In this document: one piece after another, positions 41,487 through 64,000 of the stretch
How the letters are laid out: each line of letters opens with the position of its first letter
Position numbering within the stretch: position 1 is the stretch's first letter
NCBI GenBank assembly: GCA_964019335.1
Contig: OZ025743.1
Location: forward strand, 186,001 to 250,000
Source of the DNA: Diplonema japonicum
Taxonomy: Eukaryota > Protista > Euglenozoa: Diplonemea
Length of the DNA stretch: 64,000 bases
Direction of reading: 5' to 3'
Made by a program: the position numbers and the translations under genes
The notes under the pieces: model-generated
The model's database searches: none
What the model was told of the DNA's origin: nothing
Seen by the model: the letters and a program-made list of their open reading frames with translations, nothing else

Positions 41487-42085
41487 TTTTTTTTTTTTTT
41501 TTTCTTTTTTTTTTTTTTTTCCCCCAACCCCTTCCTGTATATGTGTGCGTGTGGGTGTTTGTGTGGAGGGAGTTGTTATAACATAATATAATGTAAATCA
41601 CCGTGTAAAAGAGAGATTGTTGTTTTTTTTTTTTTTTTTTTTTTTCTTTTTTTTTTTTTTCCCCCTTCATTTGTAATGGGAAGGGGGCTGTTGGGGTTGG
41701 GATTACTCGTTGTTTGTTGTTATATTTTTTCTCGTTAATGGGGGAGGGGGATCAAAGGAAAAGGAAGAGAAAACAGAAAACTGTTTAAGGGGGGGGGGGG
41801 GGGACGGGAAAACACTTTTCTTTTTTTTTTATCTCGTGTTATTTTCATTTCTAATTTTTTTTTCTTTTTCAAAATAAAAAAGTTTACAAAAAGGGTTTAG
41901 ATTAGTCCCTCTTTTTTTTTTGTGTTTTGATATTCAAAAGCACCACACACTATTGCAAAAGAAAAAAAAGGAAAATTGGGGAAAATAAAGAGCAACGTGG
42001 TCATCGCTTAATACGAGCCAGCGGTAGGGATGGTTTATAATTAAAAAAAAAAAAAAAAACCTAGAGAACAAAAAAAAAAGATGTC

Positions 42086-42121
42086 TTTAAAGGGAACCTG
42101 CAGTATGTGACAGGATCGCCT
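42086..42121. repeat. Hairpin repeat family B, copy 2
   Basis: tttaaagggaacctgcagtatgtgacaggatcgcct, ~150 nt downstream of the NRPS stop. Confidence 0.7.
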
Positions 42122-42270
42122 AAAAAAAAGGGAGGGGGAAAAAAAAACGTTTGCCCACCCGAGAAAAAAAACTTTTTTTTTTTTAAAAAAAAAACTGAAA
42201 GTGTAATAAATATCAAAATTGAACCTCCTCATCTTTTTCTTTTATTATTTCTTCTTTCTTTTTTTTTTTT

Positions 42271-45200
42271 TTAAAACACAGGCACACACGGCGCCGCCAG
42301 AGGGTAAGGCATATAACTAACCAAATCTGTGAAATCTTCCTTTCCCCTCTCCCTCTCGACACCTTTTTCTCCCAATACCAAAACAGCACCACCACAAGTC
42401 AAAGCATTGGCATAAACACGAGCCTTACCAATATCCTCTTGCAACGCATGTATATGCACCACCCTTGCATCCACAGGCCCCGAAATGTGCGTCGCTGTGG
42501 GCCGGTTCTCAAGGACAAGAGAAGAATTATCTGTCGGGATAATATGTGCTACGGTAGGAGTAGGTATGGAGTCGGTGAGAATGGCCAGCTCTATGGATTG
42601 TGTTGATGCTGTTGTTGTTGTGGTGGTGGCTTGTTGCTCCCGTTGCTTGCTGTCAATCAAGTTCGCCAGCGCCTCCACGGTCGAATATTCGAACAGATTT
42701 TGCAGAGTCAAAACCCCCGTTTTGAACCCGAACGATTTCTTCAAACCGCTCACCACCGCCACCGCGCTCAGCGACGACCCACCGATTTCGAAGAAATCCG
42801 TTGTTTTCCCCACAGACACCCCACCTGCCCCTATCTGCATCTTGTCCTTCCAAATTTTCTCGATTATCCTTTCCGTTTCTGTAGTTAACTGAACACAGTC
42901 ACCACGTGCTTCAAAATCAGGTGACGGTAGTTTTTTCCTGTCTAGCTTACCCGATACTGTCAGTGGGAAGCTGTCCAAGAACACCCATGCAAGGGGGATC
43001 ATGTAAGCAGGCAGTTTTGAACGAAGGGTCGTGAGAAGGACTGCCTCCGACACCGGAGGCACAACATAGCCCACCAACCTCTTGTCGGAAACCATGACAA
43101 GCGTGTCCTTCACAGAGGGTATCTCCCTCAGAACTGACTCTATCTCGCCCAGTTCTATCCTTAGACCCCGGATCTTCACCTGGTGGTCGATCCTTCCCAG
43201 GAACAGAACATTCCCACTACGTGTGTACCTCCCTAGATCGCCAGATTTGTACATTTTTTTCCCGGTGTGAAATGGGTCGGGTATGAACCTTTCAGCAGTT
43301 TGTCCAGGTAGGTTAACATAGCCCTTTGCCACGCCCACTCCGCTGAAATATATCTCCCCGATGACACCAGGGGGTACCGGGTTCAGGCTTCTGTCGAGTA
43401 TGTACGTTCTATAATTCCCCAGCGAGAAACCGATGGGCACTTGATGCGACTCCCTTCCGTTGCACAAATGGATGTTCGTGGTGACGGAGACCTCGGTTGG
43501 CCCGTATGAGTTGTAAAAACGCCTCCAAGGTGTGAACCATTCCAGCATAACCTCCACGGGCAGTGCTTCTCCCATGAGGATCATGGTGGTCACGTCTCGA
43601 AGTGTCATTTCAGTGGGTAAAACAGAGAGAACGCTGGGAGACAGTGTCACTGTGTTGATCTTGTTGTCGTTGAGGTACTGAACAAGATCGTCGCCAAGAG
43701 GTTGTTGTGATGTGTCTCCCATGTACAGAGCACCGCCCACGACAAGCGCCATGAAGATCTCGGAGAACGACGAGTCGAATGTCAGGGAGGCGAACTCCAT
43801 CACACGTTCAGTGTGGTCGAACTGGTACACATCCTTCTCCGCGAAGATCATGTTTGTGATCCCCGCATGGTGGATCTGCACGCCCTTCGGTTTACCGGTC
43901 GAACCAGATGTGTATAGTATGTAAGCAAGGTCGTCCCCTGACCCTTCCGCGGGGCACGGTTGTGGTTTGTTCCTTCCCATTTCTCTCACATCGGTCAGGT
44001 TTGTTGATGGCATTCCGTCGGGTGCAGCGATGTTGTTCTCCGTCAGCAGGATTTCCATGTCGCAATCGTCCATGATGTACCTCAGCCTGTCAGCGGGAAG
44101 CGCGGGGGAAAGAGGGATGTACACCATACCGGCCGTCCACACGGCAAGCATCGCGGTGATGCCGTGGTGTGTTCTGTTCGTCAGAACACCGATCTTCGAC
44201 TTCTCCGGAAGGTTCAAGGATCGGATCCCCGATGCAAGCTGCATTACGACATCGTACAGCCCAGCGTATGTAAACGTCTCTTCCCCGTTGACAATCGCTG
44301 TGCTGTCAGGGTATTGCGATGCCGTTTCAAAGACAAGATGGTGAAGCCGTTTCGTGCTGCACGGCCAGTCCTTCCCCGTGTCGTTCCATTCCACGATTGC
44401 TCGGTGAGATTCCTCTGGGGAGGCCATAGGGACATTCTGCACGGGTTCTGCGGGGGATGCGAACAGCACGTCGCTCAGTCTTCTGTACCCCGCGGCCATC
44501 TGCACAATGGTCTCCCTCTCGAACAGATCGGTGTTGTACTCAAACCCGAATTTCACGCAGCTTCCAGAGTCCGTTGCCGTTACGTTCAAATCGAACTTAG
44601 ATCCTTCGGGTGCGATGTCAAGCGGCTTCAATGTAACACCACCCTTGTGCATCTCACTGCACACATCAGATGCAACATCGAACATGAGCTGGAACAATGG
44701 GTTCTTCGAAGGGTCACGTTCAAGCTGCAGTGCGTCGAGGACCGACTCCAACGGGACGTCTTGGTTGGCCTGCGCGTCGTGCATTGCGGTGCTCACCTTG
44801 TTGACGATGGCTGTGAAGTCCGTCGCGCTGCCCGACATGTCCAAGCGGACGGCAACGGAGTTCACGAAGAACCCAACCATCTTCTGCGTTGCCGTCTTGC
44901 CTCTGTTCGCAATCGGAACCCCTACCACAATGTCGTCCTGCCCCGTGTACTTCCCCACCAGCACGGCGAACACAGACATCAGCATCGTGAACATCGTCAC
45001 ACGGTGTGTCTTCCCGTATTCTCTGATACGATCCAACACAACACCATCGATGGTGATTGTCTCCGTTGCACCGTTGAAGGTCTGCATGGTGGGCCGCGGG
45101 TGGTCCAACGGGAGCTCAACAACCGGCGCGTCACAAAGTGTATCCTTCCAGTACTGAAGCTGCGCATTAAGCACTGCTGGAAGCGTCTCTCGCTGCCATG

Positions 45201-48200
45201 CTGCGTAGTCGACGTACTGCAGAGGGAGGTCGGGCAGCATGTGAGGCTGGTCGACAACAAGCGAGTGGTACACAGTGGTCAGCTCCTCCAGCAGGATACC
45301 CACAGACCACCCATCTGATATGATGTGGTGCATTGTCAGAATAAACACGTGGCGTGTGGCGTCGAGCACAGCAAGCTTCGCGGTGAACAACGGGCCCTCT
45401 GAAAGGACAAACTGCATCCCAGCTGCCTTCTCCGCCATCTCTACTGCAGCGTCCATTCCCGACACCTTAACCACTTCTAGCTGCATGGTGTCGTTCATCT
45501 CTTCGATCGTCTGGTAAGGGAACCCGGCTTCTGTCGTTCTGAACACTGCGCGCATGCCTTCGTGGCGTTCCACCATAATACGGAACGCGGCTTTGAAGAC
45601 GTTGGGGTCTATCATTCCGTGAACCTCCATCGCGCACGGGATGTTGTAAGCACAGCAACCTGTAGAGTCCATCTGGTCCAGCACCCACAGGCGCTGTTGT
45701 GCAAATGAGACAGGTAGCTCCCTGCCACGCGCTGCTCTGTCGAGCTTGGTGATGTCAGGCACGACATTGTGCAGCCTGTCCTGGGCAACGACTTCGGCCA
45801 GGCCTCTGATGGTCGGGTTGTCGAATAAGTCCTTCAGCTTGATCTCTTTTCCAAACACGTCGGACAGCTCTGCCACCAGCTTCACTGCTAGTAGCGAGTG
45901 GCCTCCCAAGTCGAAGAAGTTCCCTGTAGCACTCACAGATTCCCTCCCGAGGATCGCTGTCCACACCGTGTGCACGGCTGCTTCGGTCTCGCCCTCAAGC
46001 TCCACACATTGTTCTTCTTCATACATCGGAACAGGGAGCCTCTTCCTGTCTACCTTTCCACCAGTGTATGGGAACCCTTCCATCACAACATACGCCGAGG
46101 GAACCATGTACCCTGGCAACGATGCTGCTAAACACTCCTCCACAACCTCGAGGTTTGCCTCGCCTAAGATATACGCCACGATGCGCTTGTCACCAGGGTT
46201 GTCCTCCCTTGCCATGCAGATGGTCTCCTTCACGTTTTCGCATGAGCGGATCAAGGCCTCGATCTCCCCGAGCTCGATCCTGAAGCCTCTGATCTTCACC
46301 TGGTGGTCGATCCTTCCGAGGTACTCGATAGTTCCTGTCTCACCCTGCCTCACCAAGTCCCCTGTCCTGTAGATCCTGTTCGAGGGGTCTAAGTCCTCAG
46401 AGGGGGACAGGAAGGGATTCGGGATGAACTTCTCCTTCGTGAGGTCGTCCCGGAAGAGGTAGCCAGTTGCAAGCTGCGCTCCCCCGACACACAGCTCCCC
46501 CGCCACCCCTTGCGGGACCAGCTGCATCTCCGACGACACCACGTAGCAGGTCACGTTCGAGCGAGGGACCCCAATCGGGGTGCTCGTCGCTCCCGCCGCG
46601 AGCTCCCAGGTCGTTGCGATCACGGTGTTCTCGCTGGGACCGTACGCATTCACCAGGCGTCGTCTCCTCCCCGCCTCCGCGTTCCGTCCCCACTTCTCCA
46701 CCGTTCCCACAGAGCAAGCCTCCCCACCGGTCACAATCGTCTCCAGCTCCCCAAGACCTTCCGCAGGAAGAACTGCCAGAAGAGACGGTGGGAAGAGGAG
46801 AACGTTCACCCGCTCCCGACGGAGGAGCCTCTCCAACTCCACCCCGAGAAGCTCCTCCTTCTTCCCCATGCACAGGGTCGCCCCGCTCGTCAGCGTCGTG
46901 AACACCTCCCACACAGACGCATCGAAGCAGTAGGTGCTGAACTGCAGCATCCTCATCCCCTCCCTCGTCACCTCGTTCTCCTTGTTGTCCACCACCAGTG
47001 AAAGGAGACCTCTGTTCGTGAGAACAACACCCTTCGGCTTCCCTGTCGACCCAGAGGTGTAGATCACGTAGGCGGGGTCGGCCAGCTGAGTGGCAACGTG
47101 CGGGAAGTCGTGTTTATCGCTATGCTCCAAGGTATCCACATGAACAGCGTGGGCGGAGGGCGGGAGGGCGATCAGGTTGCTGAGATCGGATGTTGTCAGC
47201 AAATGCGTTGCTTTCGAATCAGCCAGCATGTAGTCGAGCCTGTCCTTCGGGTATGTCGGATCAAGGGGGAGGTAGGCAGCACCCAACTTCAGGGCAGCTA
47301 AGATCGAGGTGATCATGTACGGGCCTCTGTGAAGCGAGAGACCAACAACAGAACCTCTGCACACACCGTGCGTGTGGTAAAGAGTGGCAGCAAGACGCTG
47401 CGCCTCGGCGTGCACGCTGGCGTAGGTGAGGTGCGTGTCGTAAAAAGACACGGCAAGGCAGTCTGCGTATTCATCAGCAACGCGAAGGAGGTGCTCGTTG
47501 ACGCTGCTGACTTGCGGCAAAGACACGGCGGTCCTGTTCAGCTCCACTGCGAGGTGGTGGGCCTCGCTGTTGGTCAACATCATGAGATCCGCAATGAGAG
47601 CATCAGGGTTGCCTGCCACAGACTCCATGAGTGTTGCGTAGTGTTGCAGCATTCTCTGCATGGTGCTGGCGTCCCACAGGTCCGTGTTGTACTCCAAATT
47701 CAAGTACAGCCCGTCTGCAGCGTCGTTGGTGGAGAACTCAATGTCGAACTTCGCAACATGGGACTCCATCTCCAAAGGTGCTACTTCCAATCCGCCTCGC
47801 GGTTGCACCTCGCTGCTCACTGAGTCGTTCTGAAGGAACACGATCTGGTACAGTGGGTTCCTACTGAGGTCCCTCTCGGGGCGTAGGTCTTCAACGATAC
47901 TTTCGAACGGCATTTCTTGATGGGCAAAGGCCTCTAAGCAAACAGCGCGCACCTTATCCAGAAGGGACTTGAAAGTGTCCTTCTTGGGGTCGAAACCTGT
48001 GCGGAGTACAAGCGTATTGACAAAGAAGCCGATCAGATCCTGTGTCTCTGGCTGGTCGCGCCCCGCCACCGGCGAGCCTACCACAACGTCGTCCTGCCCG
48101 CTGTATTTGTAGAGCAGCACTTTAAACACTGCCAGCAGCGTCATAAAGGAAGTGCATCCAGCTGCCTTTCCAATGCTGTGCACCGCTGCAGATATCTCGC

Positions 48201-51200
48201 TGTCGATCCGGAGTCCTTCTGCTGCGCCGTTGAAGGTCTGCACCATGGGTCTGGACCTGTCGGTGGTGATCTCCATGGTGGGAAGACCTGACAAAGCGTT
48301 GCGCCAGTACCCAAGGAGGGTGTCCTTTACACGCGGGTCCTGCAGCCAGTTGCGCTGCCACACCGCGTAATCATGGTACTGCACCGCAAGGGGTGGGAGG
48401 GTCTCACATGCCGTCTCGTCGGTTGCACAGTTGTAAAGCGTGAAGATGTCGTTCATGAGCACAGACAACGACCACCCGTCGCACACGATGTGGTGGATGC
48501 ATATCAACAGCACGTAGTCCTCCTCGCTCGTTTGGATCAGGCTGACCCGTAGAAGTGGTCCGGTCGCCAAGTTGAATGGTGTACCAACCTCTTTTTGGAC
48601 CAAAGCCAACACCTGTGGCTCCACCGGAAGTGACTCTCTAAGGTCGAAGCGGTTGACAGCGAACGAGATCTCATCGGCAGGCTGCACCCTCTGCACACCG
48701 TTTTCGATTACCGTTCGCAGCACAGCGTGCCTCCTGACAAGAAGATCAAAGGCACCACACAGTACATCAGGCTGCTTCAACCCCTTCACCTTGACAGCAA
48801 TCGGCATGTTGTACGCAACGCTGTCCGGGTCCATGAAGGTGAGGATGTACAGACGGTGCTGAGCGTGTGACAGAGGGTACTCCGTTTGCTGCGGCTGGGC
48901 GGTGATGGGTGGGATCTCGAGTTCGTTGGATGAACCAAGTATCTCGGCCAACTGCTTCACGGACGGTGCCTCAAACAAGTTCTTCAGGCTGAGCTGCAGA
49001 CCGAGCTCCTTCTGCACCGCGGCGATCAGTCTGATGGCAAGCAGCGAATGGCCGCCGATGTCGAAGAACGACACGCCGCACCCCACTGCCTCCACACCAA
49101 GCATCCTGCAGAACAACGCGTGCAGCTTCTCCTCAACAGGTGTTGCTGGGGCATCGCTTGCATCGCCAGTCCCCAGTCCGCCCCATGTCGGCTCGGGAAG
49201 CTTCTTCCTGTCTATCTTCCCGCTTACGAGCATCGGGAACCTTTCCAACACCACGACTGTGTTCGGCACCATGTACCCAGGGAGCTTCTCTCGCACCCCG
49301 GACACAACTTCCGACTGGTCGACGACGTTGCCCTCATTTTGCACGACGTACGCTACTATCCTCTTCTCGCCTTTGCTGTCCTGCTTCACCACCACGCAAG
49401 CTTCGCGTACAGAGGTCGTGCTGCTTCGCACGGCGTTCTCGATCTCCCCAAGCTCAATGCGCAGCCCTCTGATCTTCACCTGGAAGTCTATCCTGCCCAC
49501 GTACTCCACAGCACCGTTGGAAAGGTGCCTGCAAAGATCGCCTGTGCGGTAGAGCCTTGTCCCGTTGACAGTCGGGAATGTTGTGTGTGTCTGCTTGGGT
49601 TTGTTGAGGTACCCTCTGCCAAGCTGCACACCGGCAATGCACAGTTCGCCGAATGCGCCAATAGGAGCGGGGTTGAGGTACTGGTCAAGTATGAACGCCT
49701 GCGTGTTCGCAACAACCCACCCGATCGGGACCGTTCCCTTCATGTTCTTGTGGCACTTGAACCAAAGCACCTCGATGGAAGTCTCCGTAGGGCCGTACAG
49801 GTCGTATAGCAGGCAGTTCCTGAACCTCTCGTGGAAGTCGTTCGACATCTTAACTGTCAGAGCTTCGCCTGATGCCCAGGACAGCCTCACACTGTCGAGT
49901 TTAGGCGCCCACTCCTCTCCCACTACTGAGCAGAACACATCGAGCATGGAAGGGACGAAGTGCAGCACTGTTACCTTGAACCTGCCCACAAACTCTGCAA
50001 TGTACTGCGGGTCAGAGTGGCCTCCTGGCTTGGTATACGCCAGCTCTGCGCCGTCCTTCAGCGGCCAGAAGGTCTCTGCGACAGACACGTCAAAGACGTA
50101 GGGTGTCTTCTGCATCACAACGTCGCCTGCTTTGAGTGGGTGACGTGCTGCCAACCACTTGATCCTGTTCACCGTCCCAGAGTGCTGCAACATCACCCCC
50201 TTCGGGAGCCCCGTCGACCCCGAGGTGTAGATGATGTAGGCGAGGTTCTGCGCCGTTACGTATGACACTGGTCGCTCATCGGGCATGCTAGCTACCTCTT
50301 CCCATTCAGCATCGACGGCCAGCACAGTCACGTACTGTCCCATAGAAGGCAGGTTTGCAGCCACGGCCCCTTGCGTCAAAACAACAGGCGGTTTGCAGTC
50401 GTTGACAATGTACTCAGTTCGCTGCGACGGGTTCGAAGGGTCGACGGGCACGTAGCACCCGCCTGCTTTCAGCACCGCCAGTTGCGCTACCAACATCTCC
50501 ACAGACCTCTCGAAGATGATGACCACGGCTGTCTCAGGACCGATACCCTGTGTGTGCAACCAGTTAGCCAGCTGATTAGCCTTGTTGTCCATTTCCCTGT
50601 AAGTCAGGGGTTCTGTCATGCCCTCCACGATGACACATGGCGCATCAGGTTCGCAGTCGACACGGTGCTCGAACATCCCGTGCAAGGTGGTGCCCTCGCC
50701 GTCGGAGTATTCTTCGTGAGTGTCATTCCACTCGACTTGTGCCACGTGGCGGTCTGTGTGTGTGCTCATCTCATATGAGTAGATGCACTTCACTGGGTCA
50801 TCCGACACCTCACGCAGCACTGACATGTAGGAGTTCAAGAACTTCTCTGCAGTGCTCCTCAGGAACAGGTCTGTGTTGTACTCCAGCACCAGCTGCAGCC
50901 CGCCGGAAGCCATCTCCTGTGCGAAGAGCGTCAGCTCGAACTTTGTTGTAGTCGTTGTCCTCTGTATGGGTGTTGGACCTCCCTCGCTGATGCCCTTGGC
51001 TTCCGCATCTTGCAGTACGAACATAACTTGGAAGAGAGGGTTCCTGCTCATGTCCCTTTCAGGCTGCACTGCCTCGACTACCCTCTCGAAGGGCACGTCT
51101 TGCTCGTTCAGGGCACCTATCACAGTGTTGCGCAGCGATGCGAGGTACGACAAAAACGTGGGGTTGCCCCCTGTTCGCTGTCTGATGACAAGCGTGTTGA

Positions 51201-57200: not shown

Positions 57201-60200
57201 CGAAGTGCCCTAGCATGCGGTCGGCCGTGGAAGCGTCGAACAGATCGGTGTTGTGCTCCAAGAAGACCGTCATGCCATTCGCGTGCTCTTGGCAGATGAA
57301 AGAAAGGTCCCACTTGGCAACATTCCCCTCCGGCACCACCAAGGTGAGGTTGACACCCGGGATGGCCACCTCACGTTTCTCTTTCTGATGCATCATGAAC
57401 ATGACTTGGAAGAGAGGGTGCCTGCTTGCATCCCTTTCAGGCTTCAACGTCTCAACAAGCCTGTCAAAAGGTAAGTCTTGATTGGCGTAAGCATCGAGGC
57501 AGCTGCCCTTTACCCTGCGCACGAGCTCCACGAAGCTTGGTACATCGCTGACGTCAGTGCGCATGACTTGCATGTTTACGAACAGACCCAGCATCCTGCT
57601 AGCCTCTGCCTTGGTTCTATTTGTTATAGGCGTGCCTAGCACAATGTCGTCTTGACCAGAGTAGCAGTGCATCAGAACGTTCAGTGCACTGAGCATCGTG
57701 ATGTACGTACTCGCACCAGTCCTGATCGAGATCGCTTTCATCTTCTCGACAACACCAGCAGCCAGGTCAATAGATGCGTTTGCACCCACAAAGGTCTGCT
57801 TCGGGGGGCGCTGCCTGTCGGTTGGGATCTGGAGCGTTGGCAGGTCTGCGAGACGGTGCGCCCAGTATGCTTCTTGTTCTTGCATCTCTTCGGTGAGGCT
57901 TCGCTGCCAGACAGCGAAGTCCGCGTACTGCATCTGCGGAGCAGGCTCGAGAATTCCTTCTTTAGTGTAGAAATGCGTGTACAGGCTTTGAATGTCCGCG
58001 AAGAGAATGGGCACGGACTCACCGTCCGAGATGATGTGGTGCATTGTGAGGAACAGCGTTGCCTGCTTGTCAGAAACAACGACCAGCTTCACGCGGAACA
58101 TAAACTCAGCGCTCATGTCGAACGGCTGCCCTTGTTGCACAGAGATTTCGCGGAGAATGCTGTCCTTTTCCGTTTGTGGTTTGCCTCTCACATCGACCAC
58201 GTCAAGGGGTTTGAACGTCCATGGGTGCACAACTTGCACAGGGCCCTCCTCAGAATCATCCCTGAACATGGTGCGCAGCGGCTCGTGGCGCTTTGTCAGC
58301 TCGTTCAGAACCGTCTCGATGAGCTCGGGTTTCACCTCACCTTCAAGGCAAAGCTCCATGGGAGCGAGGTACGCACCCGAGTCGTCCTTGCTAATCCTGT
58401 CCAGCAGCCAAAGCCTTTGCTGCGCGAAGGACATTGCCATTTTCGTAGGCTCGCCTTCTTTTCTGAATTGTTTTACCATGACCTTCTCGCTTCTGCCCTC
58501 CAATGCGATCTTGTCCACTACACCAGCCACGCCTGCTACAGTCGGCTGCTCGAAGAACTCTTTCAAAGGAACCTCAACGCCGAACTGCTCCTTGATGCGC
58601 CCGGTGAGTCTCACTGCTAGTAGCGAGTGGCCTCCCAAGTCGAAGAAGTTGGCTTTGACGCTAACCTTCTCCGTGTTCAGCAGCTCCTTCCACAGTGTCT
58701 CCAACCCCCTCTCTGTTTCACTCGTAGGTGGCACGTATTCACCTTCAAGAGAGTTGTAAGACTCAGGTACAGGGAGCCTCTTCCTGTCGACCTTGTTCCC
58801 AACAGTCATGGGGAAGGCGTCCAGGGAGACGAAGGAGGAAGGAACCATGTAGAAAGGAAGCCTGTCAGAAAGGTAAGAGGTGAGACCTGTCGCCACCGAG
58901 TCAGAGGAGGGGTTCACGAGGTAGGCAACGATGCGCTTGTCACCGGGCACGTCCTCGCGAACAAGGCACAGCGCGTCGTCGAAGCCCCCGAACTGCTGCA
59001 TCAAGGCCTCGATCTCCCCGAGCTCGATCCTGAAGCCTCTGATCTTCACCTGGTGGTCGATCCTTCCGAGGTACTCGATAGTTCCTGTCTCACCCTGCCT
59101 CACCAAGTCCCCTGTCCTGTAGATCCTGTTCGAGGGGTCTAAGTCCTCAGAGGGGGACAGGAAGGGATTCGGGATGAACTTCTCCTTCGTGAGGTCGTCC
59201 CGGAAGAGGTAGCCAGTTGCAAGCTGCGCTCCCCCGACACACAGCTCCCCCGCCACCCCTTGCGGGACCAGCTGCATCTCCGACGACACCACGTAGCAGG
59301 TCACGTTCGAGCGAGGGACCCCAATCGGGGTGCTCGTCGCTCCCGCCGCGAGCTCCCAGGTCGTTGCGATCACGGTGTTCTCGCTGGGACCGTACGCATT
59401 CACCAGGCGTCGTCTCCTCCCCGCCTCCGCGTTCCGTCCCCACTTCTCCACCGTTCCCACAGAGCAAGCCTCCCCACCGGTCACAATCGTCTCCAGCTCC
59501 CCAAGACCTTCCGCAGGAAGAACTGCCAGAAGAGACGGTGGGAAGAGGAGAACGTTCACCCGCTCCCGACGGAGGAGCCTCTCCAACTCCACCCCGAGAA
59601 GCTCCTCCTTCTTCCCCATGCACAGGGTCGCCCCGCTCGTCAGCGTCGTGAACACCTCCCACACAGACGCATCGAAGCAGTAGGTGCTGAACTGCAGCAT
59701 CCTCATCCCCTCCCTCGTCACCTCGTTCTCTTTGTTGTCCACACACAGGTTCACAAGCCCGCGATGGCTCAAGGCCACCCCCTTCGGCTTCCCTGTCGAC
59801 CCAGAGGTGTAGATCACGTAGGCAGGGTCTTCCCCGCTCCTCAAACCCTCCACTTCTGCTGCTTCCACAGGTGTCACCACCACCCCTTCTGCACCAGAAA
59901 ACACAGACTCCAAAACCAGCTTCCTTGCCTCTCCGGTCTCCACGCACTCCCTGCAGCGTTCAGAGACCACCACCAAGGGAACCTTGGAGTCCTCAACCAT
60001 GTAGTCGAGCCTGTCCTTCGGGTATGTCGGGTCGAGGGGAAGGTAGGCTGCCCCCAGCCCCACGATCCCCAGAACCCCGACGATCATCAAGGGGGAGCGT
60101 TCCACGCAGATGGCCACAAGGTCCCCCTTCCTCACCCCTGCCGAGGCGAGGCTGCGGGACATGCGTCCTGCCATCTTCCGAAGCCGCTCGTACGACAGGC

Positions 60201-63200
60201 TCTCTCCGTCGGAGAAGCGCAGTGCAAGAGCGTCGGGCTGCTCCGCACACTTCGCCCAGATCCACTCGTCGATCGTCTCGTACTTTGTTGTCGGCACTAC
60301 CGTCGTTTGGTTCCACTCCTTCACGGCACGGTGTTCTTCCTCTTTGCTGAGGAAACTTAGAGTCGACAGGGGCTGCCTGGGGGAAACCGTGACATGTTTG
60401 ATCATAGCAAGCAGGTGCGCCATAAGCTGCGACACAAAGTCGTTGCTGAAAAGGGCGGTGTTGTAGTCAATGGTGAACTCGACGCCCCCCGCGTCCAGCT
60501 CAAGTGCAGCGAGTGACAGGTCAAACTTGGAGATCTTGTTCTCGATGTCTGTGCTGGAGAACTGCAGCCCGGGCAGCGTGATGGCCTCCATGGGGTTGTT
60601 CTGCATCGCGAAGGTGGTTTGGAAAACTGGGTTCCTGCTGAGGTCGCGCTCGGGCTGCAGCACCTCAACTACCTTGTCGAAGGGCACTTCTTGGTTCTGA
60701 TGCGCCAACACAGACTTCTCCTTGACGCTCTTCACTATGTCAGCAAAGGTGCACCCCACGGGGAACCCAGTCCTGTACACAAGGGTGTTCACAAACAGGC
60801 CAACAATGGGCTCGATCTCCGTTCTATTCCTCGACGCGATAGGAGTCCCCACCACGATATCGTCCTGGCCGCAATAGACATGGAGGAGGGTGCTGTACGC
60901 AGCCATCAGCGCCATAAACGGCGTGCATTTCGCCTCGGAAACGAATTTTTTGAGCTGCTCGTGATCTTCCTTCTCTAAGAGAACTGTGATGGAGCGGCCC
61001 TCGAAGGTTTGAACAGAAGGGCGGGGGTACGTTGTTGGGAGCTGAAGGACTGACGAACCTTGCAGCTCGGCGACCCAGTAGTTGAGCTGCTGGTCGATGT
61101 TGACGGCAGCTGTGTTACGCTGCCACCATGCGAAGTCCGCGTACTGGATAGGTAACGGGGGCAACGAGAGGGGTGCGCCTGTCATGACCGAACGGTAACA
61201 CTCACAGAGGTCAGACACAAGGACACCAAGAGACCACCCATCAGTGATGACGTGGTGGGTGTTGATCATCATCACGTGGCTGTCCGGTTCTGTTTTGATG
61301 ATGCAAGTTCTCCATAGAGGGCCTGTGTTTAGATTGAATTGCCACGCTGCCTCCTCAGCCATGATGTCAGCTGTCTTTCCAGCGTCGCCACTTGCATCAT
61401 GCGAAACCACCACCACGCTGCTCTCTAGCTCGCTAAACGCGAGACAAGGCTCTCCGCCGGCCTCGATGGTGATCCTCGCTGTGAAGATCTCGTGGCGTGA
61501 CGCGAGCATCACCAGAGCTTTCCTCAGCGTTGCCACATCAAATGCATCGCCCTTCACTGTCACTGCGATCGGCATGTTGTACGCACTGCTTGTTCCATCC
61601 AGCTGGTCGAGCACCCACATCCTCTCCTGCGCGTACGACACGGGCAGCACAATGCTACCGTCACGTGGCTGCACTTCGATCTGCACATCGTTGTGTGCAG
61701 TGCCGCAAGCAACACTTGCAGCGACATCTGCCATCACAGGCGACTCGAACAAGTCCTTCAACGCGTACTCGACCTTGAACTCCTTCCTAATCATCGATAC
61801 CAGTTTCACAGATGAAAGCGAGTGGCCACCCATATCGAAGAAGTCAGAGTCACGCGACACCCTCTCAACACCGAGCAGCGAGCACCAGAGTTCCGCAAGA
61901 CGTGTCTCGATGCTCCCCACAGGCTCGACGTACTCGCCGTTCTCATGTTCTGTTTGCGGCTTTGGCAGTGCCCTCCTGTCAGTCTTCCCTTGTGCAGTGA
62001 GGGGCCAAGCCTCGAGGTGGACGATGGCGGAAGGGACCATGTAGGCGGGGAGCTTGGAGTCGAGGAGTGTGTTGACAGAGGGAGCGGCGTCGGCGTCGGC
62101 CGTGTGCCCCCTCGCGATCACGTAGGCGACGATCCTCTTGTCCCCAGGGATGTCCTCCCTGACGAGACACAGAACGTCCGCTGTCTCTGGGTGCTGGCGA
62201 ATCACGTTTTCGATCTCCCCGAGCTCGATCCTGAACCCCCTGATCTTCACCTGGAAGTCCACCCGCCCGATGTACTCCACCGTCCCGTCCGCGAGCCACC
62301 GCCCCACGTCCCCGGTCTTGTACAGCCGCCCGCCCTTCCCGGCCGCTCCGAACGGGTCCGCCACGAACCTCTGCGCCGTCAGCCGCGGTTGGTTCTGGTA
62401 CCCCCGCGCCAGCTGGTACTTGCCCCCGACGTGCAGCTCCCCACACACCCCGAGGGGCACCGGTTCCATCGCCTCGTTCAACAGGTACATCGTGAAGTCC
62501 TTCAGCGGGGTTCCGATGTTGCTCTGGAAGGCCCGCGACATCACCTCCTCCGTGATCTCCTTGATCGTCACGTGAACAGTTGTCTCTGTGATCCCGTACA
62601 TGTTCACCAACCGGGGCTGCTTGTACCCGAACCTCTCGAACCACTCCTTCAGGTTAGCCAGTTCCAACTTCTCTCCCCCGAAGACCACGTACCTCACTTG
62701 TAGTTCTTTCTTCTTCTTCTTCTTCTCCTTCTTCCCCTCCTCCTCCTCCTGTCCTTCCCCGAGAGCGTAAGGAATGAGTTGGTAGAAAGCAGAGGGTGTC
62801 TGGTTCAACACCGTCACCCCCTCATCCACGAGGAGCTCGTAGAAGTCGGGTGGGGATCGAGACACCAAATACGGAACAACCACAAGCTTCCCCCCGTAGC
62901 AGAGGGCCCCGTACAGTTCCCAGACACTGAAGTCGAAGGCGGAGCTGTGAAACATCGTCCAGCAGTCCCGTTCTCCGAACCCGTAGAATTCCTCCGATGC
63001 CCGCAGCAGGTGCACCACGTTTCGGTGGCAGATGAAGATCCCCTTCGGCCTTCCTGTGGAACCGGAGGTGAAGATGATGTAGCACAGGTTCTTGCTTGTC
63101 GCCTCCCTCTTCTTTGGGGCAGCTTCCTCCATCACTCCGCTTCCGCTGTTCTCTCCCTCCCCGCCCTTCTCCATGTAGAAGAGCTCTCCCTTGAAGTCGA

Positions 63201-64000
63201 GCTCGGCGAGGGCGGCCTTGTGCTCCTCCCGCGTCACCACGTACATCATTTTGCAGTCCTCGATCATGTAGGCGAGGCGGTCCTGCGGGTAGGTCACGTC
63301 CAACGGGATGTACCCTCCCCCTGCCTTCAGGACTGCCATGATCCCCACCACCAGCTCAAGGGACCTCTCCACGTACACCCCTACCAGTACGTCGGGACCC
63401 ACCCCCGCTCTTTTCAGGTGGGCAGCCACACGAGACGCCGCAACGTCCAGCTCCTTGTACGTCAGGCGTTCTCCTCCGTACACCACAGCCGTCCGCTCCC
63501 CGTGCGCCGCAACGCACTTCTCGAACATCCCGTGAAGCGTCTCGTCGCACTCCACATCCTCCTGACGGTCGTTCCACTCCACCAGCATCTGGTGCTGCTC
63601 AACTTTGCTAAGCATAGAGACTGTCGCGTACGGTGCCATCGGTGAGTCAAGAAGGGAGCCGCACAGGTTGATGAAGTGATTCAACATGCGCGACGCCGTT
63701 TCCCTGTGGAACAGGTCGGTGTTGAACTCCAGAGTGAGCTCGTACCCCGTAAGGCGCTCCAAAGCGTTCAGCGTGATGTCGAACTTGCTGATCGTGTTCC
63801 TCGTGTCCACGAAGGACAGCAACAAGTCGTCGCCCAGTTGAGGGTCCATGGGAACGTCTTGCAGAACGAAGCACGCTTGGAACAGAGGGTTGCGGGAGAG
63901 GTCGCGGGCAGGTTGCACGATGTCGACGACCTGCTCAAAGGGAATGTCTCGGTGGGTGTATGCCTTGATGCAGGTGTCCTTTACAATTGTCAAAAGGTCC
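42271..64000 (-). CDS. Giant multimodular non-ribosomal peptide synthetase, (C)-A-T-[C-A-T]x6-tail; 5' end outside the window
   Basis: Seven A domains (TSGSTG.PKG, YG..E, Y.(T/S)GD, QVKIRG.R.ELGEIE). Seven T motifs FF..GG(H/S)SL near 61825, 58628, 55415, 52215, 49048, 45898 and 42775. Six complete C domains with HHxxxDG. Single uninterrupted frame. Confidence 0.97.
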   Translation of the reverse strand, partial: DLLTIVKDTCIKAYTHRDIPFEQVVDIVQPARDLSRNPLFQACFVLQDVPMDPQLGDDLLLSFVDTRNTISKFDITLNALERLTGYELTLEFNTDLFHRETASRMLNHFINLCGSLLDSPMAPYATVSMLSKVEQHQMLVEWNDRQEDVECDETLHGMFEKCVAAHGERTAVVYGGERLTYKELDVAASRVAAHLKRAGVGPDVLVGVYVERSLELVVGIMAVLKAGGGYIPLDVTYPQDRLAYMIEDCKMMYVVTREEHKAALAELDFKGELFYMEKGGEGENSGSGVMEEAAPKKREATSKNLCYIIFTSGSTGRPKGIFICHRNVVHLLRASEEFYGFGERDCWTMFHSSAFDFSVWELYGALCYGGKLVVVPYLVSRSPPDFYELLVDEGVTVLNQTPSAFYQLIPYALGEGQEEEEGKKEKKKKKKELQVRYVVFGGEKLELANLKEWFERFGYKQPRLVNMYGITETTVHVTIKEITEEVMSRAFQSNIGTPLKDFTMYLLNEAMEPVPLGVCGELHVGGKYQLARGYQNQPRLTAQRFVADPFGAAGKGGRLYKTGDVGRWLADGTVEYIGRVDFQVKIRGFRIELGEIENVIRQHPETADVLCLVREDIPGDKRIVAYVIARGHTADADAAPSVNTLLDSKLPAYMVPSAIVHLEAWPLTAQGKTDRRALPKPQTEHENGEYVEPVGSIETRLAELWCSLLGVERVSRDSDFFDMGGHSLSSVKLVSMIRKEFKVEYALKDLFESPVMADVAASVACGTAHNDVQIEVQPRDGSIVLPVSYAQERMWVLDQLDGTSSAYNMPIAVTVKGDAFDVATLRKALVMLASRHEIFTARITIEAGGEPCLAFSELESSVVVVSHDASGDAGKTADIMAEEAAWQFNLNTGPLWRTCIIKTEPDSHVMMINTHHVITDGWSLGVLVSDLCECYRSVMTGAPLSLPPLPIQYADFAWWQRNTAAVNIDQQLNYWVAELQGSSVLQLPTTYPRPSVQTFEGRSITVLLEKEDHEQLKKFVSEAKCTPFMALMAAYSTLLHVYCGQDDIVVGTPIASRNRTEIEPIVGLFVNTLVYRTGFPVGCTFADIVKSVKEKSVLAHQNQEVPFDKVVEVLQPERDLSRNPVFQTTFAMQNNPMEAITLPGLQFSSTDIENKISKFDLSLAALELDAGGVEFTIDYNTALFSNDFVSQLMAHLLAMIKHVTVSPRQPLSTLSFLSKEEEHRAVKEWNQTTVVPTTKYETIDEWIWAKCAEQPDALALRFSDGESLSYERLRKMAGRMSRSLASAGVRKGDLVAICVERSPLMIVGVLGIVGLGAAYLPLDPTYPKDRLDYMVEDSKVPLVVVSERCRECVETGEARKLVLESVFSGAEGVVVTPVEAAEVEGLRSGEDPAYVIYTSGSTGKPKGVALSHRGLVNLCVDNKENEVTREGMRMLQFSTYCFDASVWEVFTTLTSGATLCMGKKEELLGVELERLLRRERVNVLLFPPSLLAVLPAEGLGELETIVTGGEACSVGTVEKWGRNAEAGRRRRLVNAYGPSENTVIATTWELAAGATSTPIGVPRSNVTCYVVSSEMQLVPQGVAGELCVGGAQLATGYLFRDDLTKEKFIPNPFLSPSEDLDPSNRIYRTGDLVRQGETGTIEYLGRIDHQVKIRGFRIELGEIEALMQQFGGFDDALCLVREDVPGDKRIVAYLVNPSSDSVATGLTSYLSDRLPFYMVPSSFVSLDAFPMTVGNKVDRKRLPVPESYNSLEGEYVPPTSETERGLETLWKELLNTEKVSVKANFFDLGGHSLLAVRLTGRIKEQFGVEVPLKEFFEQPTVAGVAGVVDKIALEGRSEKVMVKQFRKEGEPTKMAMSFAQQRLWLLDRISKDDSGAYLAPMELCLEGEVKPELIETVLNELTKRHEPLRTMFRDDSEEGPVQVVHPWTFKPLDVVDVRGKPQTEKDSILREISVQQGQPFDMSAEFMFRVKLVVVSDKQATLFLTMHHIISDGESVPILFADIQSLYTHFYTKEGILEPAPQMQYADFAVWQRSLTEEMQEQEAYWAHRLADLPTLQIPTDRQRPPKQTFVGANASIDLAAGVVEKMKAISIRTGASTYITMLSALNVLMHCYSGQDDIVLGTPITNRTKAEASRMLGLFVNMQVMRTDVSDVPSFVELVRRVKGSCLDAYANQDLPFDRLVETLKPERDASRHPLFQVMFMMHQKEKREVAIPGVNLTLVVPEGNVAKWDLSFICQEHANGMTVFLEHNTDLFDASTADRMLGHFAMCLDQLAAAPETPISRVTILTPAERHQVLYEWNDTELELPSKPLYAQFEERVEEMPDQVCVVFEEEHLTYSEVNGRANELAHALIEAGVQRDTVVGVCVERSWRLPVALLAVHKAGGAYTPLDPSYPRERLVYQMEDVGLQFLVSDSRLAETVCEGHGAETVILLDAFFETKCEKKKKKSSGKRENPSREGRSLKDLFMVIYTSGSTGRPKGVEVMQQGPLNNCVSLNREYGLRPGDNMLQFYTYSFDPSILEFGMAFMTGATLWMAAKEELLGDNLVGFMERNEVDAGMFPPALLKTMESVGCPRLRVLVSAGEPCINLIVEKWATPTRKLINAYGPTECSCEVSWFVVPHDGGGADGYGKGAPAGRPNCNLQLYVVDKYLNPLPVGVAGEIVCGGRQVARGYRKRDDLTPKVFVPNRFTGREGDRMYRSGDLGRYLPDGNIDFLGRVDQQVKIRGYRVELGEIEARLSEHPQVHDSICLARETALGDKRLVAYILAGEHWETLSSQDLHTFLSASLPGYMVPHAFVILQDFPRGATGKYDRKKLPEPDLHAAKQQGYVEPTTKTEKVLAQLWGTILGVGSVSAMDDFFEIGGHSLAAVRLVSAVKSSLGAEIELQNIFESSVLMEFAKCVEDAKQLTLAPIEAVDKSVPVVCSYTQQRLWVLDRLEQGNTAYNIPAAMTLDGVLDKDKFVDAIKNLHERHESLRTVFTEVSGKPMQVVQDASTAPLKVAYHDWTHKESWDAEGELSQFVSSEINKPFNLTEGPLFRASIVKTGVYKHVVVLVMHHIVSDGWSLSILLKDLSLMYTSLINGTHTGLSELRVQYADFAVWQRTHLSGAVLEEKLAFWKATLDGLPTVQMPTKPRPLTQTFSGSLETMTLDAVHVTKLTEVGKKQGCTTFMTLLAAFKLLVRHWSGQTDIVVGTGIANRVRKETEPLIGFFVNMLVLRTDLEGADFNEICRRVRKTCLDAYAHPDVPFEKIVEAVHTDRDLSRNPLFQLAFAMTNVSASAADASLGSLAMAPFQTDGTIAKFDMSIGAVESADGSVAFTAEYNTDLFNAEDVRRLFAHYHNLMVCVSENPEAMVHDFLSNEEKHCAVKEWNQTTVVPTTKYETIDEWIWAKCAEQPDALALRFSDGESLSYERLRKMAGRMSRSLASAGVRKGDLVAICVERSPLMIVGVLGIVGLGAAYLPLDPTYPKDRLDYMVEDSKVPLVVVSERCRECVETGEARKLVLESVFSGAEGVVVTPVEAAEVEGLRSGEDPAYVIYTSGSTGKPKGVALSHRGLVNLCVDNKENEVTREGMRMLQFSTYCFDASVWEVFTTLTSGATLCMGKKEELLGVELERLLRRERVNVLLFPPSLLAVLPAEGLGELETIVTGGEACSVGTVEKWGRNAEAGRRRRLVNAYGPSENTVIATTWELAAGATSTPIGVPRSNVTCYVVSSEMQLVPQGVAGELCVGGAQLATGYLFRDDLTKEKFIPNPFLSPSEDLDPSNRIYRTGDLVRQGETGTIEYLGRIDHQVKIRGFRIELGEIEALMQQFGGFDDALCLVREDVPGDKRIVAYLVNPSSDSVATGLTSYLSDRLPFYMVPSSFVSLDAFPMTVGNKVDRKRLPVPESYNSLEGDYVEAADAVELAVQGIWMEVLGAQKVSVTANFFDLGGHSLLAVAVVGRVRDKIRVEVSLKEFFEAPTVRGMARVVSMSEGNTDMAPPLTVDRLDGQDTFPLSFSQQRLWVIDRLEGGGSAYNIHNVLQWEGILDQGKLKRAFFELVARHEVLRTVFVSDDEGTGRQMVLDTLPPLFVTAEVETEAELEEIVAKDSDYVFDLAKGPLLRVKVISFGVQNVLSVNIHHIVADGWSMKVLGRELAVLYTGEDLQLPVLPVQYADYSVWQRGWLQGDVLHRKLQYWRTHLEGAPPLVLPLDHKRPLLQTYNGSAVKAGIAPNVADGLKRLSSTHDATLFMVLLAAWNVVLCRYSNQDDVSVGTPVAGRGSAATENLIGFFINTLVIRQRTGGNPTFLSYLASLRNTVIGALNEQDVPFERVVEAVQPERDMSRNPLFQVMFVLQDAEAKGISEGGPTPIQRTTTTTKFELTLFAQEMASGGLQLVLEYNTDLFLRSTAEKFLNSYMSVLREVSDDPVKCIYSYEMSTHTDRHVAQVEWNDTHEEYSDGEGTTLHGMFEHRVDCEPDAPCVIVEGMTEPLTYREMDNKANQLANWLHTQGIGPETAVVIIFERSVEMLVAQLAVLKAGGCYVPVDPSNPSQRTEYIVNDCKPPVVLTQGAVAANLPSMGQYVTVLAVDAEWEEVASMPDERPVSYVTAQNLAYIIYTSGSTGLPKGVMLQHSGTVNRIKWLAARHPLKAGDVVMQKTPYVFDVSVAETFWPLKDGAELAYTKPGGHSDPQYIAEFVGRFKVTVLHFVPSMLDVFCSVVGEEWAPKLDSVRLSWASGEALTVKMSNDFHERFRNCLLYDLYGPTETSIEVLWFKCHKNMKGTVPIGWVVANTQAFILDQYLNPAPIGAFGELCIAGVQLGRGYLNKPKQTHTTFPTVNGTRLYRTGDLCRHLSNGAVEYVGRIDFQVKIRGLRIELGEIENAVRSSTTSVREACVVVKQDSKGEKRIVAYVVQNEGNVVDQSEVVSGVREKLPGYMVPNTVVVLERFPMLVSGKIDRKKLPEPTWGGLGTGDASDAPATPVEEKLHALFCRMLGVEAVGCGVSFFDIGGHSLLAIRLIAAVQKELGLQLSLKNLFEAPSVKQLAEILGSSNELEIPPITAQPQQTEYPLSHAQHRLYILTFMDPDSVAYNMPIAVKVKGLKQPDVLCGAFDLLVRRHAVLRTVIENGVQRVQPADEISFAVNRFDLRESLPVEPQVLALVQKEVGTPFNLATGPLLRVSLIQTSEEDYVLLICIHHIVCDGWSLSVLMNDIFTLYNCATDETACETLPPLAVQYHDYAVWQRNWLQDPRVKDTLLGYWRNALSGLPTMEITTDRSRPMVQTFNGAAEGLRIDSEISAAVHSIGKAAGCTSFMTLLAVFKVLLYKYSGQDDVVVGSPVAGRDQPETQDLIGFFVNTLVLRTGFDPKKDTFKSLLDKVRAVCLEAFAHQEMPFESIVEDLRPERDLSRNPLYQIVFLQNDSVSSEVQPRGGLEVAPLEMESHVAKFDIEFSTNDAADGLYLNLEYNTDLWDASTMQRMLQHYATLMESVAGNPDALIADLMMLTNSEAHHLAVELNRTAVSLPQVSSVNEHLLRVADEYADCLAVSFYDTHLTYASVHAEAQRLAATLYHTHGVCRGSVVGLSLHRGPYMITSILAALKLGAAYLPLDPTYPKDRLDYMLADSKATHLLTTSDLSNLIALPPSAHAVHVDTLEHSDKHDFPHVATQLADPAYVIYTSGSTGKPKGVVLTNRGLLSLVVDNKENEVTREGMRMLQFSTYCFDASVWEVFTTLTSGATLCMGKKEELLGVELERLLRRERVNVLLFPPSLLAVLPAEGLGELETIVTGGEACSVGTVEKWGRNAEAGRRRRLVNAYGPSENTVIATTWELAAGATSTPIGVPRSNVTCYVVSSEMQLVPQGVAGELCVGGAQLATGYLFRDDLTKEKFIPNPFLSPSEDLDPSNRIYRTGDLVRQGETGTIEYLGRIDHQVKIRGFRIELGEIEALIRSCENVKETICMAREDNPGDKRIVAYILGEANLEVVEECLAASLPGYMVPSAYVVMEGFPYTGGKVDRKRLPVPMYEEEQCVELEGETEAAVHTVWTAILGRESVSATGNFFDLGGHSLLAVKLVAELSDVFGKEIKLKDLFDNPTIRGLAEVVAQDRLHNVVPDITKLDRAARGRELPVSFAQQRLWVLDQMDSTGCCAYNIPCAMEVHGMIDPNVFKAAFRIMVERHEGMRAVFRTTEAGFPYQTIEEMNDTMQLEVVKVSGMDAAVEMAEKAAGMQFVLSEGPLFTAKLAVLDATRHVFILTMHHIISDGWSVGILLEELTTVYHSLVVDQPHMLPDLPLQYVDYAAWQRETLPAVLNAQLQYWKDTLCDAPVVELPLDHPRPTMQTFNGATETITIDGVVLDRIREYGKTHRVTMFTMLMSVFAVLVGKYTGQDDIVVGVPIANRGKTATQKMVGFFVNSVAVRLDMSGSATDFTAIVNKVSTAMHDAQANQDVPLESVLDALQLERDPSKNPLFQLMFDVASDVCSEMHKGGVTLKPLDIAPEGSKFDLNVTATDSGSCVKFGFEYNTDLFERETIVQMAAGYRRLSDVLFASPAEPVQNVPMASPEESHRAIVEWNDTGKDWPCSTKRLHHLVFETASQYPDSTAIVNGEETFTYAGLYDVVMQLASGIRSLNLPEKSKIGVLTNRTHHGITAMLAVWTAGMVYIPLSPALPADRLRYIMDDCDMEILLTENNIAAPDGMPSTNLTDVREMGRNKPQPCPAEGSGDDLAYILYTSGSTGKPKGVQIHHAGITNMIFAEKDVYQFDHTERVMEFASLTFDSSFSEIFMALVVGGALYMGDTSQQPLGDDLVQYLNDNKINTVTLSPSVLSVLPTEMTLRDVTTMILMGEALPVEVMLEWFTPWRRFYNSYGPTEVSVTTNIHLCNGRESHQVPIGFSLGNYRTYILDRSLNPVPPGVIGEIYFSGVGVAKGYVNLPGQTAERFIPDPFHTGKKMYKSGDLGRYTRSGNVLFLGRIDHQVKIRGLRIELGEIESVLREIPSVKDTLVMVSDKRLVGYVVPPVSEAVLLTTLRSKLPAYMIPLAWVFLDSFPLTVSGKLDRKKLPSPDFEARGDCVQLTTETERIIEKIWKDKMQIGAGGVSVGKTTDFFEIGGSSLSAVAVVSGLKKSFGFKTGVLTLQNLFEYSTVEALANLIDSKQREQQATTTTTTASTQSIELAILTDSIPTPTVAHIIPTDNSSLVLENRPTATHISGPVDARVVHIHALQEDIGKARVYANALTCGGAVLVLGEKGVERERGKEDFTDLVSYMPYPLAAPCVPVF
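46250..46992. repeat. Third, partial (~740 bp) copy of the repeated A-domain core
   Basis: Offset 6339 from 52589-53331; one mismatch seen at 46981. Confidence 0.9.
52328..53918. repeat. ~1.59 kb direct repeat (whole A domain), apparently identical to 58739-60329
   Basis: Constant offset of 6411; identical ORF translations in several frames. Confidence 0.92.

Follow-up and report, generated by a model that had tools for sequence, protein, structure and literature searches.

Does the long nonribosomal peptide synthetase (NRPS) frame at the end of a 64,000-nucleotide stretch of Diplonema japonicum DNA belong to the protist, how far does it extend, and what might it make? The stretch, hereafter the window, is C96:186001-250000, taken from a 374-kb contig (OZ025743.1) of a 62.5-Mb assembly in 132 contigs. 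A first-pass annotation, made from the letters of the window alone, described a horizontally acquired assembly line of condensation (C), adenylation (A) and carrier (T) domains embedded in an array of protist genes. We report here that the window carries the last third of one resident NRPS gene of 18 modules. The reading that we favor, and hold to be likely, is that the gene resides in the nuclear genome of a diplonemid-like euglenozoan and encodes a hybrid polyketide synthase (PKS)/NRPS megasynthetase, with the initiation, release and history proposed below. The loader, the release step and the exchange of cassettes between modules are the unusual features of this NRPS.

Extent of the open reading frame

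The ORF (open reading frame) finder places the window part of the gene at 42271-63993 on the minus strand (7240 amino acids), and the frame is open through base 64000. This 3′ part (42271-64000, minus strand; 21.7 kb), which encodes residues 14089-21330 plus the stop codon, is one open frame, as the first-pass annotation had stated in reporting a single ORF of more than 21.7 kb. Reading of the next 60 kb of the contig revealed that the ORF reaches 42.3 kb beyond the end of the window. The frame remains open upstream until an in-frame stop at extended coordinate 106641, and the first plausible ATG lies at 106263, which corresponds to C96:292263; a 470-bp homopolymer spacer separates this ATG from the stop of the upstream gene. 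From window position 42271 to C96:292263, the full ORF measures 63,993 nt and encodes, in a single intron-free frame, a protein of 21,330 amino acids and 2.35 MDa. A Pfam scan of the whole genome likewise recovered 18 Condensation domains inside one open frame of 21,455 codons. The remaining two sense frames of the 64-kb gene contain 579 and 868 stops, which excludes a chance ORF. A protein of this length would, to our knowledge, rank among the largest single-polypeptide NRPSs. In size (21,330 amino acids, 18 modules), it is comparable to the 18-module peptaibol synthetase of Trichoderma.

Module organization

The order of domains along the protein is a degenerate FAAL-like A-T-KS0-AT-KR-ACP region followed by 18 collinear C-A-T modules (M1 to M18), which span residues 2056-21201 and measure 1026-1145 amino acids each. 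In the window part, Pfam detects only Condensation, AMP-binding, AMP-binding_C and PP-binding, in seven C stretches, eight A stretches and seven T domains; one A domain was probably split by the query cut and gave two of the eight A stretches. The window contains modules M13 to M18 in full and M12 for the most part, that is, seven A, seven T, six whole C domains and one partial C domain, and the HHxxxDG motifs in this part are spaced by 1054-1072 amino acids, or about 3.2 kb. The earlier count of at least seven modules was correct in their regular length of about 3.2 kb and too low in their number, given the 18 modules and PKS-type N-terminus; the latter was found 42.3 kb past position 64000, in the direction in which the same annotation had advised looking for a starter module. 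All modules in the window are encoded on the minus strand. M12 (61639-64000) comprises the end of a C domain cut by the window, an A domain at about 61984-63525 and a T domain, and is followed by the C-A-T modules M13 (58432-61638), M14 (55237-58431), M15 (52027-55236), M16 (48871-52026), M17 (45709-48870) and M18 (42661-45708). The last carrier domain corresponds to residues 21134-21201, and the 129 amino acids after it form a C-terminal tail (42274-42660, minus strand), for which we found no Pfam family, no match in the protein atlas and no confident fold using AlphaFold on the single sequence (pLDDT 35).

Core motifs are conserved across the whole array. The C-domain motif reads HHxxxDG in 15 of the 18 modules, HHxxxDA in M4 and M11, and HHAVSDE in M6. 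Motifs A3, A7 and A10 as well as Asp235 and Lys517 are present in 18 of 18 A domains in a motif-anchored MAFFT alignment, and all T domains carry GGxS with the phosphopantetheine-accepting Ser. No epimerization (E), methyltransferase (MT), thioesterase (TE) or reductase (R) domain was found by Pfam anywhere in the 21,330-amino-acid protein, and a search of the C domains for a second N-terminal HH motif was negative, which indicates that there are no dual E/C domains. The lack of E, MT and TE domains, initially noticed in the window, extends in this way to the entire protein, whose modules are constant in length. We take the C1 and C2 motifs (SxAQxRLW and RHExLRT), including those of M1, to be of the elongation (LCL/DCL) kind.

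Residency and host

Sizeable ORFs all lie on the strand of the NRPS gene across 42 kb below it and 18 kb above it, and the neighbors are ordinary eukaryotic genes (kinase, BCD1/CSD/zinc-finger, ART-ankyrin, acyl-CoA synthetase, biotin carboxylase and ETF-alpha). The NRPS stop codon at 42271-42273 gives way to a host-type intergenic spacer (41487-42270) that consists of homopolymer runs of A, T and C, beyond which starts a protein kinase gene with a PDZ-like N-terminus (39729-41486, minus strand), whose product is identical to a protein recorded from a EukProt source, to which two proteins of the window could be traced; homopolymer spacers are found at both ends of the NRPS gene. GC content at third codon positions (GC3) is 0.71 in the NRPS gene and 0.53-0.69 in 14 neighbors, and its relative synonymous codon usage (RSCU) correlates with that of the neighbors (r = 0.88).

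We compared short-read contigs of four public runs (X1, X5, X7 and X11) over positions 40300-46200. Runs X1, X5 and X7, which come from three studies, yield contigs that agree with the window at 100% identity, and in X1 the kinase has a k-mer depth of 212.8 and the NRPS one of 233.7. Run X11 represents a second organism, whose contigs, free of indels, are 91-93% identical to the window in the kinase gene as well as along 2.7 kb of the NRPS gene; among the changed codons listed, 16 of 35 are synonymous. In X5 and X7, the depth of the NRPS is 5-40 times lower than that of the kinase (9 versus 48, and 2-10 versus 112, respectively) and X7 covers the NRPS in fragmented contigs; this pattern looks like RNA rather than DNA coverage, the library type being unrecorded. 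Within the spacer, positions 42073-42269 exceed the flanks in k-mer depth by a factor of 40 to at least 1000 in each of the four runs, and this segment is a genome-wide low-complexity repeat where short-read contigs end.

Because co-oriented host genes and homopolymer spacers occur at both ends, codon usage matches, depth in X1 agrees and copies exist in a second organism, the gene is resident and not a contaminant. The co-orientation with housekeeping genes and the host-type homopolymer DNA after the gene, both put forward in the first-pass annotation, are confirmed on both sides of the gene and beyond its stop, respectively, and the discordant coverage that it named as the mark of a chimeric contig is not what X1 displays.

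For the identity of the host, we turned to the spliced leader. Its 19-nt 3′ part, in the kinetoplastid/diplonemid form, was counted 232 times in the genome, versus 0 in the control, and full copies read ACCAACGATTCTAAAGCTACAGTTTCTGTACTTTATTG. Kinetoplastid spliced leaders begin AACTAACGC, and we take a sequence designated ‘Euglenozoa 14’ to be the leader of Diplonema. The leader found here is two changes away from the one listed under that designation (PMC3795323). Judged by this marker, the host is a euglenozoan with a diplonemid-like spliced leader, in agreement with the initial guess of a probable euglenozoan. Full leaders are dispersed on many contigs (L014:1486-1520, L015:1484-1520 and about 230 other places), with homopolymer tracts directly before the leader in the two copies examined; they may be spliced-leader RNA genes or relics of retroposed mRNAs.

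Relatives and origin

Compared with solved structures, M18 scores 716 bits against LgrA, 589 against teixobactin Txo2, 431 against TycB and 293 against the fungal PsoA. Identity to 1.84 billion protein representatives is 30-37% in a search that ranks by the summed score of multimodule proteins and could hide a closer single-module relative; none emerged from searches limited by protein length or from a scan of the genomes of 185,579 species. Among proteins of 630-2004 amino acids, identity does not exceed 39% and every named match is bacterial, while M16-M18 reach at most 38% among proteins of 4-12.7 thousand amino acids (Myxococcus, Nostoc, Acidobacteriota and others). The best C domains in the 185,579 species' genomes are 34-41% identical. 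Among the matches listed, none is longer than about 8000 amino acids, and eukaryotic NRPSs of the size of the Trichoderma synthetase Tex1 are outside this comparison.

We next placed the C domains in phylogenetic trees. All 18 form one side of a branch in a FastTree phylogeny with 125 bacterial C domains taken from the best matches, and they group together in two IQ-TREE phylogenies, one built with a 55-domain subsample of those 125 (SH-aLRT 94), the other with 80 named C domains that the scan of species' genomes had supplied (SH-aLRT 92). Their end branches are long in the three trees (about 0.8-1.3 for M1-M4, versus medians of 0.33-0.44). From these comparisons, the NRPS appears to be of bacterial type and old in the host lineage, and horizontal acquisition is plausible. 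Given identities of at most 41%, host-like codons and a C-domain clade of its own, a transfer, if any, would be old and its donor beyond identification.

This interpretation modifies the earlier one. The scores of LgrA and PsoA (716 versus 293 bits) and the bacterial origin of the named database matches support the initial view of a canonical linear NRPS of bacterial type. Of the statement that the gene was horizontally acquired and is now resident, the second half stands; the first is not demonstrated by a gene with at most 41% identity to anything found, host-like codons and its own C-domain clade. Neither of the two signs of a recent transfer, a close bacterial homolog and foreign codon usage, was found (maximum identity 37-41%; RSCU r = 0.88). 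A recent bacterial transfer, or a bacterial contaminant joined to the protist contig by the assembler, would account for the bacterial sequence type, for an NRPS GC content of about 57% compared with 39-50% in the bulk flanking windows and for a junction uncrossed by short-read contigs. We nevertheless regard it as very improbable in view of a best identity of 37-41% across billions of proteins and the genomes of 185,579 species, host-like codon usage with GC3 near that of the neighbors, homopolymer spacers and same-strand host genes at both ends, a depth in X1 equal to that of the kinase, and the presence of both genes in a second organism.

Three known systems help to situate this resident gene. 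Bacterial linear NRPSs (LgrA and the giants of Myxococcota, Cyanobacteria and Acidobacteriota) have the same collinear C-A-T organization, core motifs and Thr code, and their MbtH partner and type II thioesterase (TEII) are also present in the Diplonema genome. Unlike them, the gene described here unites 18 modules in one 21,330-amino-acid polypeptide encoded in a eukaryotic gene array, shares only 32-41% identity with them, has no cis TE, and is served by scattered helper genes in which MbtH is fused to TEII. The peptaibol synthetase of Trichoderma (TPS/Tex1) carries one KS-AT-ACP module and a reductase in addition to its 18 NRPS modules (PMC2835699). Each of the two is a eukaryotic megasynthetase in a single ORF that opens with a PKS-type starter and continues with exactly 18 C-A-T modules, and the product, predicted in the present case, is linear and about 18 residues long. 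The diplonemid-like gene differs in an extra degenerate A-T pair, a KR and a dead KS, and it lacks the C-terminal reductase, which yields an amino alcohol in peptaibol synthetases, Pfam finding no NAD_binding_4 in the full protein. As for kinship with fungal peptaibol synthetases, PsoA scores 293 bits to the 716 of LgrA, and proteins of the size of Tex1 are beyond the matches listed (at most about 8000 amino acids). The enzyme would work like a bacterial linear NRPS and its layout is most like that of the Trichoderma synthetase, yet we do not file it with peptaibol synthetases because it has no reductase and its KS is dead. The third system corrects the first-pass annotation, whose author was aware of no characterized peptide natural products in Euglenozoa: euglenatides are characterized PKS-NRPS products of Euglena gracilis (PMC9321709, PMC11703798). 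These hybrid polyketide-peptide products come from the same phylum as the host, but they are small cyclic peptides of a photosynthetic euglenid, which belongs to another class, and the comparison concerns the products. In the literature searched, we found no report of NRPS or PKS for Bodo, kinetoplastids or diplonemids.

Specificity codes and cassette exchange

Specificity codes were read from MAFFT alignments anchored on the core motifs. M1, M5 and M11 share the code DIMFHGCVEK, M2 and M12 share DFWNVGMVHK, M6 and M10 share DASQAMSVSK, M8 and M14 share DPLMVAACEK, and M13, M15 and M17 share DAWLVGAVIK; M3, M7 and M16 have the related codes DVWHASLIEK, DVWHGSLIEK and DVAHWSLIEK, respectively, and M4 (DTMFIADVSK), M9 (DAWLVALIEK) and M18 (DSSTIMSVTK) have codes of their own. 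We take DFWNVGMVHK to be a Thr code, and its presence in the A domain of M12 (about 61984-63525) corroborates the Thr-type code noted on first pass. The codes of M3, M7 and M16 are presumably Ser-like and that of M13, M15 and M17 Leu-like, by resemblance only. Read by module order, the product would be a linear peptide of 18 residues, X1-Thr-(Ser)-X4-X1-X6-(Ser)-X8-X9-X6-X1-Thr-(Leu)-X8-(Leu)-(Ser)-(Leu)-X18, in which parentheses denote a code that only resembles that of the residue and X an unassignable code. Since neither E nor dual E/C domains are present, the predicted peptide is probably all-L.

The recurrence of codes has a counterpart at the DNA level. Self-comparison of the gene revealed cassettes that are 99.2-99.5% identical over about 1.58 kb in M1, M5 and M11, 99.6% identical over 1.96 kb in M6 and M10, 100% identical over 1.59 kb in M8 and M14 (1594 bp of A cassette), and 97.6% identical over 1.74 kb in M13 and M15. 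The A-T cassettes of M2 and M12 are 97.7% identical over 1.8 kb, of which 1.6 kb at 100%. M17 has a chimeric A domain, 0.83 kb of which (832 bp, 46250-47079) is 97.4% identical to M13 and M15, with the same specificity code. The C domains of the 18 modules share only 27-41% amino-acid identity among themselves. The combination of near-identical A(-T) cassettes with divergent C domains indicates that cassettes, and not whole modules, were copied recently and in frame; gene conversion or recombination within the gene would have spread the A(-T) cassettes from one module to another.

Repeats of this kind raise the question of whether the gene is real and its assembled module count or order wrong, through collapse or expansion of repeats, the more so as one short-read contig of X5 jumps back 3063 nt within the gene. 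We consider such an error unlikely. The frame is open through every junction, the 18 distinct C domains (27-41% identity) anchor the modules by unique sequence longer than the repeats, and the gene lies in a 374-kb contig of an assembly of 132 contigs and 62.5 Mb, a contiguity from which we infer a long-read build, itself unrecorded.

Initiation, elongation and release

The resident megasynthetase begins with a loading region of 2055 residues that contains, in order, a partial AMP-binding domain (50 bits), PP-binding, KS, AT, KR and PP-binding, and that is 25-40% identical (mostly 28-34%) to bacterial modular PKSs in local alignments. Alignment to CurL indicates that the Cys/His/His triad of a KS extension module is replaced by Ser/Ser/Phe, and that the AT keeps the Ser of GHSHG, the His and the Arg, with GQGSQ changed to GAGNE and HAFH to ILLH. 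The KR motifs are intact (TGGLGGYG and GS...YAAAN), and the carrier motif GIES, with the Ser expected of an ACP, is present. In the loader A domain, all three marks of a FAAL loader are missing: the A3 P-loop is replaced, A7 is changed from TGD to TRE with loss of its Asp, and the A8 hinge motif is lost. The best match of this domain among solved structures scores 23 bits. Neither the loader A domain nor the KS looks catalytically competent. The same order of AMP-ligase, carrier, KS, AT, KR, carrier and C is found in the FAAL-ACP-PKS lipoinitiation modules of bacterial lipopeptides, the closest match in the database being the metagenomic P0115 (FAAL-KS-AT-KR-ACP; 30% identity over 83% of the query). 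Unlike these bacterial modules, the D. japonicum gene is devoid of the adenylation P-loop, the A7 Asp, the A8 motif and the Cys/His/His of the KS, and has altered AT motifs.

Candidate helper genes lie unclustered on other contigs. Two Sfp-type phosphopantetheinyl transferases (PPTases) with AASDHPPT_N and ACPS domains are encoded at L017:1264-2136 and L018:919-2262, a result that answers the suggestion of the first-pass annotation to look for such an enzyme. A 380-amino-acid ORF (L024:1468-2610, minus strand; contig C3, about 15.1-16.2 kb), adjoining a SAC3/GANP gene, encodes an MbtH-like domain (42 bits; 46 bits against PA2412) fused to a TEII, whose best match is RifR (85 bits), with GxSxG and the His of GGHFF conserved. 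The fusion represents a bacterial-style NRPS helper in the form of a free-standing eukaryotic gene. A second free-standing thioesterase (L025:1021-2046, on contig C17) is another candidate for release in trans.

In the mechanism that we propose, one of the two Sfp/AASDHPPT-type PPTases would prime the carrier domains. With a loader A domain and a KS that both appear inactive, synthesis most likely starts from a small acyl group, which the AT would load onto the second carrier and C1 would join to residue 1, as in the starter module (KS-AT-ACP) of fungal peptaibol synthetases; the alternative is initiation without acylation. Eighteen collinear condensations without epimerization would follow, the MbtH part of the fusion protein assisting the A domains. 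Release would most likely occur in trans, through hydrolysis by the MbtH-TEII fusion encoded on C3. Loading of the starter in trans could fall to a free-standing, acyl-CoA synthetase-like AMP-binding enzyme of 549 amino acids, encoded at window positions 11600-13249 (minus strand) at a distance of 30 kb downstream from the NRPS gene, but nothing links both genes. We rejected as trans termination module the product of a gene on contig C94 (C-A-T-R, 1618 amino acids), whose C domain has lost its catalytic His (HRxxxDA) and is only 19-25% identical to the C domains of the giant NRPS.

Several points weigh against a resident, working megasynthetase of this kind. No contig of the four runs bridges positions 41474-42283, every contig breaking at the homopolymers, with the consequence that physical linkage of the NRPS to the kinase is provided by the long contig alone. 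None of the runs recorded as RNA contains the NRPS gene, and expression is suggested only by the uneven depth in X5 and X7. A terminal release domain (TE, R or terminal C) was not found, the last T domain being followed only by the 129-amino-acid tail; with a degenerate loader and KS as well, the proposed initiation and release steps are guesses. Most codes of the 18 modules match no published code known to us. The A(-T) cassettes, 1.6-2 kb long and 97.4-100% identical, could mislead an assembler. Finally, a long-branch or composition artefact may account in part for the grouping of the C domains in one clade, as their branches are long and their composition deviates.

Some of these points would be equally expected of a biosynthetically silent relic, that is, an intact ORF that makes nothing, or nothing that leaves the enzyme. 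The loss of the KS triad and of the loader P-loop, the missing TE, R or terminal C domain, the HHxxxDE motif in the C domain of M6 and the lack of the gene in runs recorded as RNA all fit such a relic, but it is difficult to reconcile with a 64-kb frame that stayed open while the other sense frames hold 579 and 868 stops, or with catalytic motifs kept in all 18 modules. The copy in the second organism is free of indels and has an excess of synonymous changes, PPTases and the MbtH-TEII gene are retained, and the recent homogenization of cassettes preserved the reading frame. We hence give silence a small chance and retain the reading of a functional resident megasynthetase.

Neighboring genes and other features

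A 997-amino-acid ORF at window positions 24772-27765 (minus strand) combines an NAD:arginine ADP-ribosyltransferase domain (39 bits) with a long ankyrin array, and its GC content of 0.59 is the highest among the neighbors. The biotin carboxylase ORF (L010:854-2431, minus strand) starts midway along the Biotin_carb_N profile, at position 44, and an upstream exon or intron is likely.

Elsewhere in the genome, three single-module NRPS-like genes were found: L020:2270-7126 on C94 (C*-A-T-R, the asterisk marking the C domain with HRxxxDA), L021:34-5889 on C107 (partial C, A-T and carboxylesterase) and L022:4019-9067 on C19 (partial C, A-T and a hexapeptide-repeat match below the Pfam cut-off). Type I PKS- or FAS-like frames occur at C111:46707-47435, C72:389317-395517, C113:120833-121576 and C10:391536-394946; such frames measure 2689, 1952 and 3149 amino acids, in addition to a frame of 2611 codons with two stops. 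The C72 frame contains TE and KS, and a 4163-amino-acid frame on C10 contains KS and a PPTase domain. The genome holds a small secondary-metabolism repertoire.

Implications

Few groups of marine heterotrophic flagellates are as diverse as diplonemids, and a diplonemid-like group probably makes a long peptide natural product. As a tentative and more far-reaching proposal, which we think possible though on balance doubtful, the gene would encode an anciently acquired, lineage-specific diplonemid megasynthetase, evolved as a eukaryotic gene with scattered bacterial-style helpers and a fossilized lipoinitiation module, reprogrammed by cassette exchange between modules that are otherwise ancient and producing an 18-residue, peptaibol-like linear (acyl)peptide for predation or defense. 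If true, this would be a new class of protist natural product. For the discovery of natural products, the gene offers a concrete target in a group of marine protists that is abundant yet chemically unexplored. It is also a natural example of the exchange of A-domain cassettes within one gene, which bears on the rules of NRPS engineering, and it indicates that an assembly line of bacterial type can persist, and may even work, in a eukaryotic genome in which its PPTase, MbtH and type II thioesterase are unclustered.

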